DNA from: Paramicrosporidium saccamoebae KSL3
Taxonomy: Eukaryota; Fungi; Cryptomycota
DNA: 10,029 bases
Direction of reading: 5' to 3'
Assembly (NCBI GenBank): GCA_002794465.1
Contig: MTSL01000178.1
Coordinates: 1-10,029, forward strand
A program made the position numbers and the translations under genes. This document shows positions 1,927 to 7,301 of the stretch, piece after piece; position 1 is the stretch's first letter; each line of letters starts with the position of its first letter. The notes under the pieces are model-generated. The model was not told the DNA's origin. It ran no database searches and was given only the letters and a program-made list of their open reading frames with translations.

Positions 1927-3581
1927 CTACCGGCTCGTGTGGAGCGGCAGATTGGGATCCGAGACAGTCTGGGGAGAGTCGCACTCCATAAAGAATCCCT
2001 CCGTTTCTGGTAGACTTATGGGAGAGATGCGGCCTTCCTCCAGACGCTGCTTAAACCAATACCGCCAACTACTGTTCTCGAGTCGGCGCTCGGCCACATG
2101 GGCAGAGTATTCGTTAGGGAGGGGAAGAGGGGGAGAGTGTTGGCGGGCAGAACGACTGTAAAAGCGCCAGGTCTGGATAATATCGTCCTTGTGGTCCTTG
2201 ATATGACGGACGAGCGCCTGGGCCGGATCAGCCCGATCCTCTGCCATGAGCAGTTGGTTCTTGATTTGCACTACAGCTGCATCAGAGAGCCAGGCGGGCA
2301 GATAGGGAAGGGGACAATTAGAGGAACTTGGAACACTGGTACCCAGAGGCACCGCAATAGGACCGCACGAATTGATCTTTGTCTTTCCATTCAGAACGGG
2401 TCCCTCCGCAACCATTCCCTCGGGAATAGAATCCACTGGCGTCATTCTCCTCCTCAACGAGGAAACGTACTTTTCCTGCGAATTCTTCCTCATCTTTTCG
2501 CGATCCTGGTTCCGCATGCAATTCTTCATGTATCCGTCCCATGACAGACACCGCAGCCCCGCAGTCTCAGAGATGAGCGCCTTTACTCGATTGGCAAATT
2601 CAATTCCCGTCTCGTTGGGCTTTCGACGCTGTGGGGGAAGCCACCAGACATCAGCAATCATAAACCAGCGTGTCATTAGGTATAGGGCGTGCTGTGTAAA
2701 GGTTTGTTCGCGCGTGTTCCAGTAGGGATCGAGGAGGCGCTTATTGTATTTTATGGCGACGGGACAGACAAGTGCGTCAAGCTCAAAGGCTCCCTTATGA
2801 AAGAGGACAGTGCTTTCGTTATTCACACAGGTGCCCTCCGGGAAGATGATCAGTGGAGTTGTCTGAGGACGTTTGTTAATGTGTGCCTGCATCCGCTTGG
2901 CAACAGCCACACGATCACGCGCTTCATTACGATTGAAGAAGAGTGATCCGTTTGCTATAAGAGCGTATTTTTGGAACCAGCCAAACAGTCCGCCGTGATT
3001 CTGGGCTACCGTCGCATGGGGGATTTTGTGGGAGCTCATCAAAAAGTAATCAATAAAACTGGTGTGGTTGGCAACAAACAAGTGCGAGTCCTTTGGTGAT
3101 GGCTTCTTTCCGTGGTGTCTGATAAAGGCAGAGAAGCTGAAAAGCCAGGCTTGGCAGTAGACCTTGAAGACCAGTAACAGGAACGGCTGGCTTCGACTGA
3201 CAATGGCTATTGGCAGCAAGAGCACAAATAAAATGCTTGCAGTCAGAATAATGCCCAATCTGATGGGAAACAGGATGCCGTACCGGATTGCCATGCCTCC
3301 TAGGTACAGCCAATACAGCAGGGTGCTCTTGGGTTGCACCGTCGGCTTTGGTTCAAAACATTTGCTGAATTCGTCTCGCGATAGAGCCTGTGCTGCATAC
3401 GATAGGAACATCATTCCATCCTCGAATGCAATCCTATCGACATTAGCCGTTGTGGAGTGGAGAGTTACAGTCGCTGGGACGGAGTTTGTGGGGCAGCGTG
3501 CACCGGACGCATCCGGTCGCGGTGTACAATAGGAGAGACCAATTTGATGGTTGGGATGGGCATGGCGAGTCCCTCGGTCAT
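1927..3581 (-). CDS. Glycerol-3-phosphate acyltransferase, GPAT3/GPAT4/plant GPAT9 type, with a long C-terminal extension; join(3581..3469, 3433..1927), 539 aa
   Basis: Acyltransferase motifs VANHTSFIDY (HxxxxD), FFNR, IFPEGTCVNN and FHKGAF are present. Family-typical segments include DEFSKCF, IRYGILFPIR, PVAIKY, ADVWWLPP, FANRVKALIS and LSWDGYMK. The ORF-track start (3414) lies inside the region homologous to the GPAT9 N-terminal block. Removing the 35-nt intron joins it in frame to ATG 3581 (or 3563). The core assignment is strong; exon 1 is inferred. Confidence 0.9.
3434..3468 (-). other. 35-nt spliceosomal intron in GPAT
   Basis: GTAACT...GGCTAAT...GATAG, with the branch A 9 nt from the 3' end. 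Splicing removes an in-frame TAA and gives CT|G ATT GCA TTC GAG GAT GGA ATG in the GPAT frame. Confidence 0.78.
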
Positions 3582-3845: not shown

Positions 3846-3901
3846 TTAATTACAAGATCAGCAATAATCGCAGAATCAGATATAATTAATTACAAGGTCA
3901 G
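3846..3901. repeat. 16-bp direct repeat duplicating the ribophorin I stop region
   Basis: ttaattacaagatcag (3846-3861) versus ttaattacaaggtcag (3886-3901): 15/16 identical, 40 bp apart. Confidence 0.75.
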
Positions 3902-5713
3902 TAGACGGGCTTCGCATTGGAGCACCCGCTCGTCCAAATCAACAGCATCTTTTTCCAGGCGCGATACAATGTTGGCAGATGACTCACTTATCAGTGACCG
4001 GAGCTTTGCCAACTGCTCCTCATACAGCTTCTTGAGGGCTACCGTAGCCATCAGTGTAGGTCGATCTACCGGTTCTTCATCAGAGAGAACCCTTGCTACC
4101 TCCTCCGAAACACTGAAAAGCTCATCAATGCACGCCCGGGCGTTCTCCTTTTCGCTTCGCACCGATTCTAGATCATGTAAAAGTCCACGTCGCTCACGGA
4201 ATAGCTTGGCTATCATAATACGACCTTTTTCACGATCGACCTGATGGAGACCAAGATTGGCCTCACCAAGTTGGATGAGTAGCAGAACAACTAGGATGCA
4301 AATGGCCGCAGTCATGACCGGTAGTCTAAAGATTGTCCAGCGGGGGTAATCAAAGATCATGGCCGCCTGTCCTAGATGATCTTTGGCAACATTTTTGAGG
4401 TTGATGGAAAATACCAAATTGTCGCCGGCAAATAATGGCATGGGTATTGTAAATTCCTCCTTTATGCTTACAAAAGTGTCCACCGCAGTGACAATGGGTG
4501 CCCCATATGCGGTGGAACCGGCAGGCAAGACTATGCGAAACTTGAATTCGTCAATAGTCACGTCATTGTAAATATCAAACAGGGGCACAATAATCCTCTT
4601 GGCCTTCAGGTTGTCTTCTTTGATATAAACATTGTCAATGAACCCGTCCATCGGCAATGAATAAGTCGCAGTCCAAGCCATATTCCATCCCCCACTAACA
4701 GGGAACCGCGGTGGGACCTCAATTACATGCGAAGTGGGCAGTACTGGCGAGGGACGGCGATGCATGGGGGAGTGGATCAGTCCAACCTCATCCCGGATCT
4801 GGAATTCACTGGCCTGGGAGGGCACTGATATGGGAATCAGCGGCAAGATTTGACTCTCCATTCCGCGCTGGTGAAGTCCTTGAAGGAATTCGATTCGGTT
4901 GAAGCTGTCATCCTTTGTTTTGTGCCCCAGATTGACAATTTCGTACTTTTCAGTGACCAGTAATCGCTTTTTTAATGGACTGATCTCTACCGTGCGTTCC
5001 AGTTTTTGAATTTTGTAAAAAGGCAGCCTCGTCACTGTAAAGTGAACCCAAAGCGATCCCAGTGCATCATGTAATGGTGCAGTGTTTTCATAAACACCAC
5101 AGGTGTACATTGTTCCCGGGAGAGCCCCACCCGCTGGTACTGCGCTTCCTTTCAGACTTCGCGGTTCTGGACAGCTGATCTTGTTCATGGTAAACTCTTT
5201 GATCATCAGCACGTCTGTCTTTTGTCTCAGCGTCGGATAAGGCGAGTAGAAGACGGACGACATTTCACATCGTACCCCTAACGGTGTCTTCTGGTCAGCT
5301 ACCGAGGGTGTCATGATGTAGCGATTGACATAGCTGATTCCTAGCCCAAAACTGACTTTTGGATTGCTTCTTGTCAGTGGAGTCGGAAGATTGATGACAA
5401 AGCAGCGGTGTCCAATGGGACAGTCTGTCTTTTCCGTAACGGGAAGCCTTGAATTTGGACCAGTGTTACCGATGGCGCTAATGTGACTAAAGTCTGCCAC
5501 CATGGCGGTCGGCAGAATGACTTGGTAGTTGTGAACCGGTCCTGCCGTATTCTCATCCAGCGCTGCAACTATCGAGTATTCCTCACGCAACACTGGTGAG
5601 CTAAGATAGACCACCCGCTTTACTTGCTGGTTCACCAATCCCTCTGGGGCAAAACTGTCCAGCAGCACAGCACCCGCCGAGGCGAGGAGCACGCCAAAGT
5701 GCATGAGATTCAT
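3890..5713 (-). CDS. OST1: Ribophorin I / oligosaccharyltransferase subunit 1 (RPN1/OST1), 607 aa
   Basis: Signal-peptide-like N-terminus, then LVNQQVKRVVYLSS, FYSPYPTLRQKT, SFNRIEF, IRDEVGLIHS and PPRFPVSGGWNMAWTATYSLP (ribophorin I RFPLFGGW motif). One C-terminal TM segment (PVMTAAICILVVLLLIQL) is followed by a helical cytosolic tail. The start may be 5713 or 5704. Confidence 0.88.
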   Translation of the reverse strand: MNLMHFGVLLASAGAVLLDSFAPEGLVNQQVKRVVYLSSPVLREEYSIVAALDENTAGPVHNYQVILPTAMVADFSHISAIGNTGPNSRLPVTEKTDCPIGHRCFVINLPTPLTRSNPKVSFGLGISYVNRYIMTPSVADQKTPLGVRCEMSSVFYSPYPTLRQKTDVLMIKEFTMNKISCPEPRSLKGSAVPAGGALPGTMYTCGVYENTAPLHDALGSLWVHFTVTRLPFYKIQKLERTVEISPLKKRLLVTEKYEIVNLGHKTKDDSFNRIEFLQGLHQRGMESQILPLIPISVPSQASEFQIRDEVGLIHSPMHRRPSPVLPTSHVIEVPPRFPVSGGWNMAWTATYSLPMDGFIDNVYIKEDNLKAKRIIVPLFDIYNDVTIDEFKFRIVLPAGSTAYGAPIVTAVDTFVSIKEEFTIPMPLFAGDNLVFSINLKNVAKDHLGQAAMIFDYPRWTIFRLPVMTAAICILVVLLLIQLGEANLGLHQVDREKGRIMIAKLFRERRGLLHDLESVRSEKENARACIDELFSVSEEVARVLSDEEPVDRPTLMATVALKKLYEEQLAKLRSLISESSANIVSRLEKDAVDLDERVLQCEARLLTL

Positions 5714-5756: not shown

Positions 5757-7120
5757 CATGGAGCGACCATCGGGCATCCTGAGGAGATAGTCTCCGTGTT
5801 GCGTTATGTAGCGCACCCATGGCAGGGCGGGATAGCCGCTCTTCTCAACAATCTTCAGGTACCGCACCTGAATACCAGAGGCAGTGTAGTAGGGCACTTC
5901 AAACTTTACAGAGATTGGTAGCAGTTTATGTTCACTGGCATCCTCTACAGAATAAGCAATATAAGGGACGCATACCAGATTTCACACTGGGGAAACCAAA
6001 ACGAGCGCGCATTTGGAATTCCTTTCCGCTTGGGAAGAATCCAATAGTCCATACAATGGCAGCTTGGTCGGGCTCGTACGAGGCCGTTCCAACCGTCGTC
6101 TAAACAATCAGCATCAAGTAAAGTATATACTTTGAATTTCGGTGTATCAGCATCCTCAGGGACAGGGATGATAATTTCCACGCCATTTGCATTCGTCCGT
6201 TTTTTCAGCTGACTCTTGGCCTTGATCAGATACTCAATTCTACTGGCGCTCCATCGCTCAATGACACATTCGACCCAAATGGGTGGCTTCATTGCCGTCG
6301 GTGTCATCCGGTACGACATGAGCTCAAAATCTCCGTCCGGCGGTATAAATGAAATGGCTCGTTCTGATTCAAATTTCTGCAGCCTGACGCATTGGTGGAA
6401 TTTGACGTCTTCCAGATCCACCGTTTTGGCCGTGCGGCCGGTGCGACCAGAATTTTCAAAGAGAATGCGGTCGTTGAGACCGAGCCGCAGTTCGGGCATC
6501 CCAGAGAGGTAGCAGCGCACCTTGACCGAGCCGACAATTTCGGATTGTACAACGTTCCCGTTGCTATTGACAAGCAAATTGAGAGACTCGATGACGTCGA
6601 GGAACACTTCATTCTTCCGATACTTGATACCCTCGGAACGCCACGAGACTGCACTAGTGACAGCGGAGGGGGGACGTGCGGGGCCAGTGTCCAGCTGGAA
6701 GGACTGTTGAGTAATGTACTCTTTTAAAATGTTCTTTTCTGTCGTCTGAGCATGGCCAAAGTCCATCATTTCGTCAAGAAGCTCATAGACCACCACGAAA
6801 TTGTCCCGAAGACTCTCTTCCTCCAACTCCCGAAAGTACTCTGTGAAGACATCGACTAGTCGGTGCAGAAACAACAGCGCTGTCATAACATTCGAGTTGC
6901 GCTTTGTCAGGGCCAATATGTAAAGATTGGCGTGGCGAATGTGTACGTAAGTGATATCGTTGCATGTCAAGATGGGCGTGGCAGTGCGCTTCTGGTCTTC
7001 CAAGTCGGAGAGGAGTCCAACAAACTTTTCTGCAGCATCCGGCGAAATATCGCCGCGATAGTCACGGTGCAAAAGGACCTTTCCCTTTAGGTCCAAAAAA
7101 AAGATGGAAGACAACACCAT
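5754..7120 (-). CDS. APM1: AP-1 adaptor complex mu subunit; join(7120..6131, 6099..5976, 5944..5754), 434 aa
   Basis: Motifs SSIFFLDLKGKVLL, LEEESLRDNFVVVYELLDEMMDFG, VTSAVSWRSEGIKYRKNEVFLDVIE, CYLSGMPELRLGLND, DVKFHQCVRL and FIPPDGDFELMSYR are present. Removing two 31-nt introns restores PKFK|TTVG...WTIGFFPSGKEFQMRARFGFPSV and PISVKFEVPYYTASGIQVRYLKIVEKSGYPALPWVRYITQHGDY, the canonical mu1 C-terminus. Confidence 0.95.
5945..5975 (-). other. 31-nt spliceosomal intron 2 of APM1
   Basis: GTATGCGTCCCTTATATTGCTTATTCTGTAG; removal is required to restore the conserved C-terminal frame. The branch-like GCTTAT has its A 8 nt from the end. Confidence 0.92.
6100..6130 (-). other. 31-nt spliceosomal intron 1 of APM1
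   Basis: GTATATACTTTACTTGATGCTGATTGTTTAG; removal restores PKFK-TTVG. The branch-like GCTGAT has its A 8 nt from the end. Confidence 0.93.
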
Positions 7121-7286
7121 GCTGTGTGAAACGATATGGATAAATGTTTACTGTGAGGTTTGTTATGTAATGATCCGCGGGGTTGGTATTATAATGATGA
7201 TCCATTAGGTTGGTATTATAGAGATGATCCACTAGGTTGGTGTTGTATTGAGGATCCACCAGATTGGTGTTGTATTGGGGATCCAT
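7062..7286 (-). CDS. Possible 74-aa repeat-containing small protein / overlapping uORF (MDPQYNTNLVDPQYNTNLVDHLYNTNLMDHHYNTNPADHY...)
   Basis: An ATG sits immediately before the first full repeat unit, and the repeat variation is biased to synonymous sites in this frame. The ORF overlaps the first 59 nt of APM1 in another frame. The ORF-track start at 7388 is GTG, not ATG. Confidence 0.35.
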   Translation of the reverse strand: MDPQYNTNLVDPQYNTNLVDHLYNTNLMDHHYNTNPADHYITNLTVNIYPYRFTQHGVVFHLFFGPKGKGPFAP

Positions 7287-7301
7287 GAGGTTGATATGGT
7301 A
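7152..7301. repeat. 27-bp minisatellite: 4 full units plus 2 degenerate flanking units
   Basis: Minus-strand units: GATCCCCAATACAACACCAATCTGGTG, GATCCTCAATACAACACCAACCTAGTG, GATCATCTCTATAATACCAACCTAATG, GATCATCATTATAATACCAACCCCGCG (7283-7176). A 24-nt degenerate unit follows at 7175-7152. Confidence 0.95.

Follow-up and report, generated by a model that had tools for sequence, protein, structure and literature searches.

A glycerol-3-phosphate acyltransferase with a conserved C-terminal DUF1752 tail, a candidate nutrient-signalling helix that resembles the 14-3-3 ligand of ChREBP

Glycerol-3-phosphate acyltransferase (GPAT) carries out the committed step of glycerolipid synthesis, and its tuning by nutrients is poorly understood in any eukaryote. 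A 10,029-nucleotide stretch of the Paramicrosporidium saccamoebae KSL3 genome (assembly GCA_002794465.1, contig MTSL01000178.1), hereafter the window, brings this question to a single gene. Its minus strand encodes, at 1927..3414, an uninterrupted open reading frame (ORF) of 495 codons with zero internal stops, in which a GPAT3/4/9-type acyltransferase is followed by a putative C-terminal regulatory tail. An earlier note on this DNA had read the tail as a DUF1752-like module connecting the enzyme to a 14-3-3, PP1 or metabolite-sensing switch. What is this tail, and what might it bind? We are confident that the fusion is real, namely that one gene encodes a GPAT3/4/GPAT9 of the endoplasmic reticulum (ER) type with a conserved helical C-terminal extension of about 95 residues, DUF1752 identity included. 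The overall reading, in which this architecture and domain identity are blended with the 14-3-3 docking mechanism proposed below, is one towards which we lean slightly.

The identity of the enzyme as a GPAT3/4/9-type protein, as originally proposed, is borne out by its Pfam score, its named relatives and its PlsC-like fold, which agree with one another. The acyltransferase domain PF01553 (aa 98-222, 2749..3123; all features of the ORF lie on the minus strand) matches with 67.4 bits against a cut-off of 23 (E 1.4e-18), and named relatives are annotated as “Glycerol-3-phosphate acyltransferase 9”, “glycerol-3-phosphate O-acyltransferase 3/4” or “AGPAT6”. AlphaFold2 models the core confidently, with PlsC (5kym) as the best Foldseek match (E 1.1e-6, probability 1.00); the protein falls far below the cut-offs of the NCBIfam bacterial PlsC models. 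Across 38 aligned homologues, N116, H117, T118 and D122 in and next to catalytic motif I (H117-T-S-F-I-D122, the HxxxxD motif as read from the sequence, 3049..3066) are at least 90% conserved, while F191, P192, E193 and G194 of motif III (F191-P-E-G-T195, 2830..2844) are invariant and T195 is nearly so. At the N-terminus, AlphaFold2 predicts a membrane hairpin of two helices (aa 31-73 and 76-93, 3136..3324) with a predicted local distance difference test score (pLDDT) of about 90-97 over aa 31-93; from what is known of GPAT3/4, these helices would span the ER membrane. The remaining core (aa 223-324, 2443..2748) comprises many invariant columns, the LSWDGYMKN block (aa 290-298), predicted helices at 270-285, 294-299 and 302-324, and a post-core helix. 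The HxxxxD and FPEGT motifs, the N-terminal hairpin, the LxWDG block and the PlsC-like fold are common to animal GPAT3/GPAT4 (AGPAT9/AGPAT6) and to GPAT9 of plants and algae, and by homology the window protein would acylate glycerol-3-phosphate at the sn-1 position. Compared with the retrieved algal and microsporidian homologues, however, it adds a C-terminal extension of ~175 aa that carries the DUF1752 motif.

This extension begins after the last GPAT core blocks, LSWDGYMK (aa 290-297) and QEKY (aa 316-319), past which the frame remains open for 176 residues, in line with the previous estimate of about 175. A variable, probably disordered linker (aa 325-368, 2311..2442; pLDDT below 50 over aa 334-369) leads into helix A (aa 373-390, 2245..2298; P-x-W-L ... 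K-N-x-L-L), which overlaps a predicted helix at 378-393 and contains the invariant N386 and the nearly invariant L389. The first DUF1752 half-motif follows (aa 411-421, DIIQTWRFYSR, 2152..2184), separated by a clade-specific spacer (aa 422-441, 2092..2151) from the second half-motif, which we call the RLEN helix (aa 442-460, ERRLENSSWRYWFKQRLEE, 2035..2091) and propose as the docking helix. The spacer contains the sequence RQHSPP and is about 13 residues longer than its chytrid counterpart. The segment aa 409-468 (nt 2190..2011) translates as KDDIIQTWRFYSRSARQHSPPLPLPNEYSAHVAERRLENSSWRYWFKQRLEEGRISPISL, exactly as transcribed before, and contains KDDIIQTWRFYSRS...AERRLENSSWRYWFKQRLEEGRISPISL, including TWRFY...RRLENSSWRYWFKQ. 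A poorly conserved end (aa 461-495 and the stop codon, 1927..2034) closes the protein. According to AlphaFold2, the tail forms helices at 378-393, 397-407, 412-426 and 435-463, all of moderate confidence, the last of which encloses the RLEN helix.

Sequence conservation is distributed unevenly along the tail. The RLEN helix of the window protein is 78.9% identical to that of close relatives and 65.5% to that of chytrids, on par with the catalytic core (80.2% and 58.8%); purifying selection on this isolated stretch is therefore as strong as on the active site. The corresponding values are 15% and 6% for the linker, and 21.7% and 9.5% for the C-terminal end, where pLDDT is below 50. Across the 38 homologues, N386, R444, E446, N447, W450 and R451 never vary, while W416, R443 and W453 are kept in at least 90%; the W, RLEN and WR residues singled out in the earlier note are thus present in orthologous tails.

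DUF1752 (PF08550, GATA_AreA), known from AreA/Gat1 GATA factors and Reg1/Reg2, has a common two-part signature, W-[KR]-x-[YF] ... R-L-E-N-x-x-W-R-x-W. The window protein has both halves, W416-R-F-Y419 and R444-L-E-N-S-S-W-R-Y-W453, with a spacer about 13 residues above the family norm. Because these extra residues part the half-motifs, the match to PF08550 covers only profile positions 16-28 of 28 and stays below the gathering score. The proposed DUF1752 assignment therefore holds at the level of the orthologue group and of profile homology, but not for the window protein considered alone. Chytrid tails, whose half-motifs keep the canonical spacing, exceed the threshold, with 22.2 bits for Geranomyces (profile positions 2-28) and 28.3 bits for P0149, and 31 of 37 tails match PF08550 at E<=0.01 (best 2.8e-7). 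Alignment of the profile of these GPAT tails (A1, 37 sequences) with that of 45 non-GPAT DUF1752 cores (A3) by hhalign gave a probability of 99.1% (E 6.5e-19).

An exhaustive hidden Markov model (HMM) search of 1.84 billion representative sequences retrieved 162 proteins at E<=0.001, with GATA factors and other DUF1752 proteins ranked immediately behind the GPAT tails. About 50 of these cover the whole tail, and those checked are GPATs, many of them fragments; the rest match through the DUF1752 core only, nearly always at residues 6-30. The non-GPAT proteins scanned comprised two-finger GATA factors, Reg1-type sequences (RLENASWRTW) and a GT4/GT1 glycosyltransferase. In the last case (P0185 and P0132, one of them from the red alga Galdieria sulphuraria), DUF1752 lies N-terminal to the enzyme, showing that the motif is confined neither to fungi nor to regulators of transcription and phosphatases. 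The setting in the window protein is unusual: whereas DUF1752 mostly starts between residues 6 and 30 of soluble regulators, here it spans aa 411-456 of a 495-residue membrane enzyme, its half-motifs stand about 13 residues further apart, and it is preceded by helix A, which is specific to GPAT tails, since the match of non-GPAT DUF1752 proteins is limited to profile positions of about 39 to 80. Within the core, LSWDGYMKN (2521-2547; KLKNLSWDGYFKN in chytrids) gives a weak secondary match to RIENSSWRLWFKQ of the tail profile, which is either coincidental or a hint of a tail helix that mimics, or derives from, a core helix.

How widely is this architecture distributed? A homologue search of 5.8 billion proteins produced 511 matches, of which 120 were listed. 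The closest among the matches listed are environmental or genome proteins of 69-74% identity (P0001/P0002, same layout), followed by many Chytridiomycota at 42-44% identity over 93% of the query. Of the 120 listed homologues, 43 contain the strict pattern R-[LIVM]-E-N-x-x-W-R-x-x and one more matches it in relaxed form, and the tail profile also detects tails with Y or H in place of N, such as those of Synchytrium, Gonapodya, Hyaloraphidium, Clydaea, Lobulomyces and Gorgonomyces. Chytrid genera with the motif include Batrachochytrium, Spizellomyces, Cladochytrium, Synchytrium, Gonapodya and Hyaloraphidium; it is found in nearly every tail-bearing chytrid orthologue retrieved, and GPAT and tail occur together in more than 25 named chytrid gene models. 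The earlier note knew of no GPAT3/4/GPAT9 with the motif, which has to be corrected, given that chytrid orthologues across many genera carry it. Three of these GPAT9-like proteins (P0028 and P0033 of Cladochytrium replicatum, and P0048 of Kappamyces) have precomputed PF08550 and PF01553 annotations, with the domain order and tail module of the window protein. In the chytrid proteins the spacer is short and another long stretch is often appended at the C-terminus, whereas the clade of the window protein is characterized by compact, intron-poor genes and the expanded spacer.

In a tail-profile search of the retrieved homologues, the motif was not found in microsporidia or green algae. Many tail-less sequences that carry no species name are short gene calls, in which the absence of a tail is unreliable. 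In a neighbour-joining tree of the core, too rough for a firm placement, the clade of the window protein falls among environmental sequences and closer to microsporidia than to named chytrids. If this placement is correct, the tail would be older than that split and would have been lost in microsporidia, which is a tentative reading. Judged from these comparisons, the combination of GPAT and tail appears ancestral in zoosporic fungi, where purifying selection on it is strong. Literature searches (DUF1752, PF08550, ChREBP/Reg1, Mondo/fungi, GPAT9/Chytridiomycota) returned no paper on a GPAT-DUF1752 fusion or on a link between DUF1752 and Mondo proteins. The architecture is already present in public protein sets and is the rule in chytrids, while a description of it in the literature was not found.

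The same comparisons bear on a trivial explanation, that the tail is an artefact (translated 3′ untranslated region, intron read-through or mis-assembly) or that the motif is a chance match. The last 12 codons do lie in a locally duplicated segment, and the exact protein sequence is missing from the public collection searched. On the other hand, 176 codons are open, the helix is conserved like an active site across dozens of species, and independent annotated models from more than 25 chytrid genomes include the tail. Moreover, the two nearest genomes, the GCA_047514055.1 locus (L001) and a locus from the Logan assembly of SRR11844784 (L002), share with the window the gene order AP-mu / ribophorin I / GPAT / GDA1-CD39, with proteins about 70% identical, and in both the GPAT ORF is continuous and laid out as in the window, which argues against read-through or mis-assembly. 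Conservation effectively refutes an artefactual or chance origin, to which we assign a negligible likelihood.

Among PDB sequences, the tail is most similar to the mammalian sugar sensor ChREBP. When the tail profile was compared with all PDB sequences, the top match was ChREBP (5f74_B, E 0.014), with profile positions 44-80 aligned to ChREBP 102-138 (VSPKWKNFKGLKLLCRDKIRLNNAIWRAWYIQYVQRR) and both half-motifs at equal spacing. The non-GPAT DUF1752 profile likewise retrieved ChREBP chains 9gcp_B, 4gnt_B and 5f74_B as the top three of 177,635 sequences (E 0.036-0.2), and in the opposite direction PF08550 was the sole Pfam match to the ChREBP segment among 24,736 models (E 0.064). A Mondo exon profile, built from a 41-residue ChREBP query and 11 vertebrate exon fragments and accordingly shallow (effective number of sequences, Neff, 1.26), aligned by hhalign with DUF1752 at 93.6% (score 31.6, 32 gapless columns) and with the GPAT tails at 87.9% (score 29.2). 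Column-shuffled controls scored far lower: 300 of them gave a mean of 8.5, a standard deviation (SD) of 2.5 and a maximum of 17.1 for DUF1752, and those for GPAT tails a mean of 10.0, SD of 2.7 and maximum of 26.0, with 9.8 for the reversed profile. The observed Mondo scores are about 7-9 SD above these controls. Searching the PDB with the tail as a single sequence returned noise only (E at least 0.3), and the ChREBP match emerges only with profiles.

The aligned region is the α2 helix of Mondo-conserved region III in ChREBP/MondoA (residues 117-137; PDB 4GNT, 5F74, 6YGJ and 9GCP). Register and spacing are equal, with KWKNF ... RLNNAIWRAWYIQ in ChREBP against TWRFY ... RLENSSWRYWFKQ in the window protein, and aa 411-421 align with TWRV.TK of other DUF1752 proteins as well as with KWKNFKG of ChREBP. 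Anchoring the alignment on W127 = W450 yields 7 of 14 identical residues between ChREBP 120-133 and the RLEN helix: R121, L122, N124, W127, R128, W130 and Q133 of ChREBP correspond to R444, L445, N447, W450, R451, W453 and Q456. The match is confined to about 37 residues, as the other Mondo regions (MCR I, II, IV and V) and the bHLH-Zip domain were undetectable in the window protein and Pfam reported no HLH. The resemblance to ChREBP described in the earlier note thus reappears as the top PDB match of two independent profiles, far above shuffled controls. The similarity between DUF1752 and ChREBP is real and well above compositional chance; it may reflect homology or convergence, both of which are compatible with the marginal E-values and the shallow profile.

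What could such a helix do on a GPAT? Residues 117-137 of ChREBP are among the few phosphorylation-independent ligands of 14-3-3 (PMC11873037, PMC7414219). In complex with ChREBP, the phospho-acceptor pocket of 14-3-3 is filled by free phosphate or sulfate, by AMP or by a synthetic glue; ChREBP R128 bridges the pocket ligand and 14-3-3 E182, while W127 and I120 contribute to the lining of the composite pocket (PMC11873037, PMC7414219). Of these residues, W127 and R128 have their counterparts in the invariant W450 and R451. Ketone bodies have been reported to raise the binding of ChREBP to 14-3-3. In yeast, the 14-3-3 proteins Bmh1/2 bind a conserved region of Reg1, 187-232 (PMC10847541), and the Reg1 DUF1752 comprises residues 173-204, with its function stated as unassigned in a 2025 study (PMC12520357). 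These two intervals overlap, such that the RLEN helix of Reg1 falls within the mapped 14-3-3-binding region. By analogy, we propose that the RLEN helix of the GPAT, on the cytosolic face of the ER, could dock a soluble regulator, for which a 14-3-3 dimer is the likeliest candidate. Binding would be independent of phosphorylation, with the helix lying in the groove like the ChREBP α2 helix, and a phosphate-bearing metabolite might occupy the composite pocket and there make contact with the conserved W-R pair. Docking would then change the activity, oligomeric state or location of the GPAT in response to carbon and nitrogen status. Fitting a shared soluble partner, the same motif occurs on GATA factors, Reg1-type proteins and a GT4 glycosyltransferase. 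We regard this mechanism as a serious candidate for the GPAT tail, if somewhat short of an even chance.

A pattern search of the window protein for strict classical 14-3-3 mode I/II sites found none. One relaxed mode-I site (R-x-x-S-x-P) is provided by RQHSPP of the spacer (aa 424-429, 2128-2145), which is present in the closest relatives only. In 27 of 44 homologues, moreover, a basic RR-x-[ST] sequence (aa 322-325 in the window protein) follows the LSWDG block at a distance of no more than 160 residues.

Several observations weigh against a ChREBP-like 14-3-3 ligand. A review has Bmh binding phosphorylated Reg1 (PMC10847541), which would fit a classical phospho-site better than the helix, and co-precipitation of 14-3-3 was unchanged in the five Reg1 missense mutants that were characterised, among them W165G, located immediately before the motif on its N-terminal side (PMC12520357). 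The contact residue I120 of ChREBP is not conserved, as R443 takes its place in the window protein, and N123 aligns with E446. ChREBP database E-values are marginal (0.014-0.2) over about 32-37 residues only, and against PF08550 the window protein scores 13.0, 14.6, 16.8 or 17.0 bits, depending on the fragment, relative to the gathering score of 20.9. Finally, tail pLDDT is only 50-65 in the full-length model, the tail modelled alone has a predicted template modelling score (pTM) of 0.33 and no defined tertiary fold, and Foldseek returned zero matches to the tail-only AlphaFold2 model, in which no globular fold was recognisable.

Mammalian GPAT activity is restrained by AMPK, which counts for a different partner: the DUF1752 helix may dock Snf1/AMPK, or act as a metabolite-dependent recruitment element, with GPAT as the recruited substrate or effector. 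Consistent with this idea, several 2-deoxyglucose (2DG)-resistance missense mutations map in and beside the Reg1 DUF1752, and Reg1 W165G abolishes 2DG-induced recruitment to Snf1 and Rod1 while leaving 14-3-3 binding unchanged (PMC12520357). However, W165 is located outside the 28-residue motif and DUF1752 is not known to contact Snf1 directly; GATA factors and a glycosyltransferase also carry the motif, a 14-3-3 ligand is the nearest relative of the RLEN helix with a solved structure, and a pattern search of the window protein did not find an AMPK consensus site. We consider Snf1/AMPK docking unlikely, though worth keeping beside the 14-3-3 proposal.

The kinship with Reg1 could alternatively mean that the tail is a PP1 (Glc7)-targeting subunit, as the earlier note had allowed. 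Its sole support is that DUF1752 is common to Reg1 and Reg2, whereas PP1 binding by Reg1 maps to RHIHF (464-468), far from DUF1752 (PMC12520357). The PP1-docking (RVxF) pattern [RK]-x(0,1)-[VI]-{P}-[FW] occurs nowhere in the 495 residues, and a loose match in 8 of 44 homologues is at chance level. We therefore reject PP1 targeting, which we hold to be highly improbable.

Alternatively, the tail may be an intrinsic element of the enzyme and need no partner, either as an amphipathic Trp/Arg-rich helix on the surface of the ER or lipid droplets, or folded back on the catalytic domain in autoinhibition or dimerisation. The stretch WRYWFKQRL is rich in interfacial aromatic and basic residues, the GPAT-specific helix A with its invariant N386 could pack on the RLEN helix, and the core sequence LSWDGYMKN weakly resembles the motif, as noted above. 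Against this, transcription factors and PP1 regulators, soluble proteins that one would not expect to bind membranes, have the motif conserved at their N-termini, membrane-surface helices do not typically contain residues such as the invariant E446 and N447, and AlphaFold2 did not dock the tail confidently on the core. An intrinsic role appears less likely still than recruitment of Snf1, and docking of 14-3-3 remains the mechanism that we prefer.

The surroundings of the gene add several observations. At its 5′ side, a stop is reached without any earlier in-frame ATG, and the residues directly upstream of the first ATG (3415-3440, minus strand; ..DRIAFEDG-MMFLSY across the start) are kept in relatives (P0007: FDDGIMFLTY); the true N-terminus of the GPAT may lie in an upstream exon or arise from another start. 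On the 3′ side, the spacer between GPAT and GDA1 is ~800 nt long in the window and ~157 nt at the L002 locus, and it contains duplications (1271-1557 and 1880-1965). Positions 1376-1440 are 89% identical to 1901-1965, the latter containing the last 12 codons of the GPAT and its stop. There is also a resemblance between 1271-1318 and 1440-1487, and 1488-1557 consists of a tandemly repeated 35-nt unit.

The window as a whole is gene-dense eukaryotic DNA with a GC content of about 50%, in which a tRNA scan found none. In addition to the GPAT, its minus strand encodes a GDA1/CD39 nucleoside phosphatase (3-1112, running off the window), ribophorin I (3890-5713) and the mu subunit of an AP complex (5945-7120). 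The AP-mu ORF matches PF00928 only over positions 1-162 of 259 and has an unconserved end, and the gene is split in L001 (318-1893) and L002 (2492-3539) as well, making an intron near its 3′ part likely. L001 has an additional protein kinase gene between AP-mu and ribophorin I. A 27-nt tandem repeat at 7181-7297 (4.3 copies, 82% matches) encodes, on the minus strand, repeated peptides of the type YNTNL(M/V)D, within an ORF that matched no family.

Taken together, a whole deep fungal lineage retains on its GPAT a signalling motif that is conserved like an active site, which suggests direct nutrient control of the enzyme through the tail. The match to the ChREBP helix, the overlap with the Bmh-binding region of Reg1 and the presence of the motif on a GPAT lead to the hypothesis that DUF1752 is a helical 14-3-3 ligand. 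In its broadest form, which we think rather doubtful, DUF1752 and Mondo-conserved region III would be one ancient, metabolite-stabilised and phosphorylation-independent 14-3-3 helix, attached to AreA/Gat1, ChREBP/MondoA, Reg1, a glycosyltransferase and GPAT, and flux through GPAT would be gated post-translationally. Reg1 W165G, a mutation neighbouring DUF1752, blocks the response to a sugar signal (PMC12520357). If DUF1752 is indeed such a ligand, this would bear on how the glucose signal reaches Reg1-Glc7/Snf1, on the regulation of AreA/Gat1 and on the control of lipid synthesis in chytrids.

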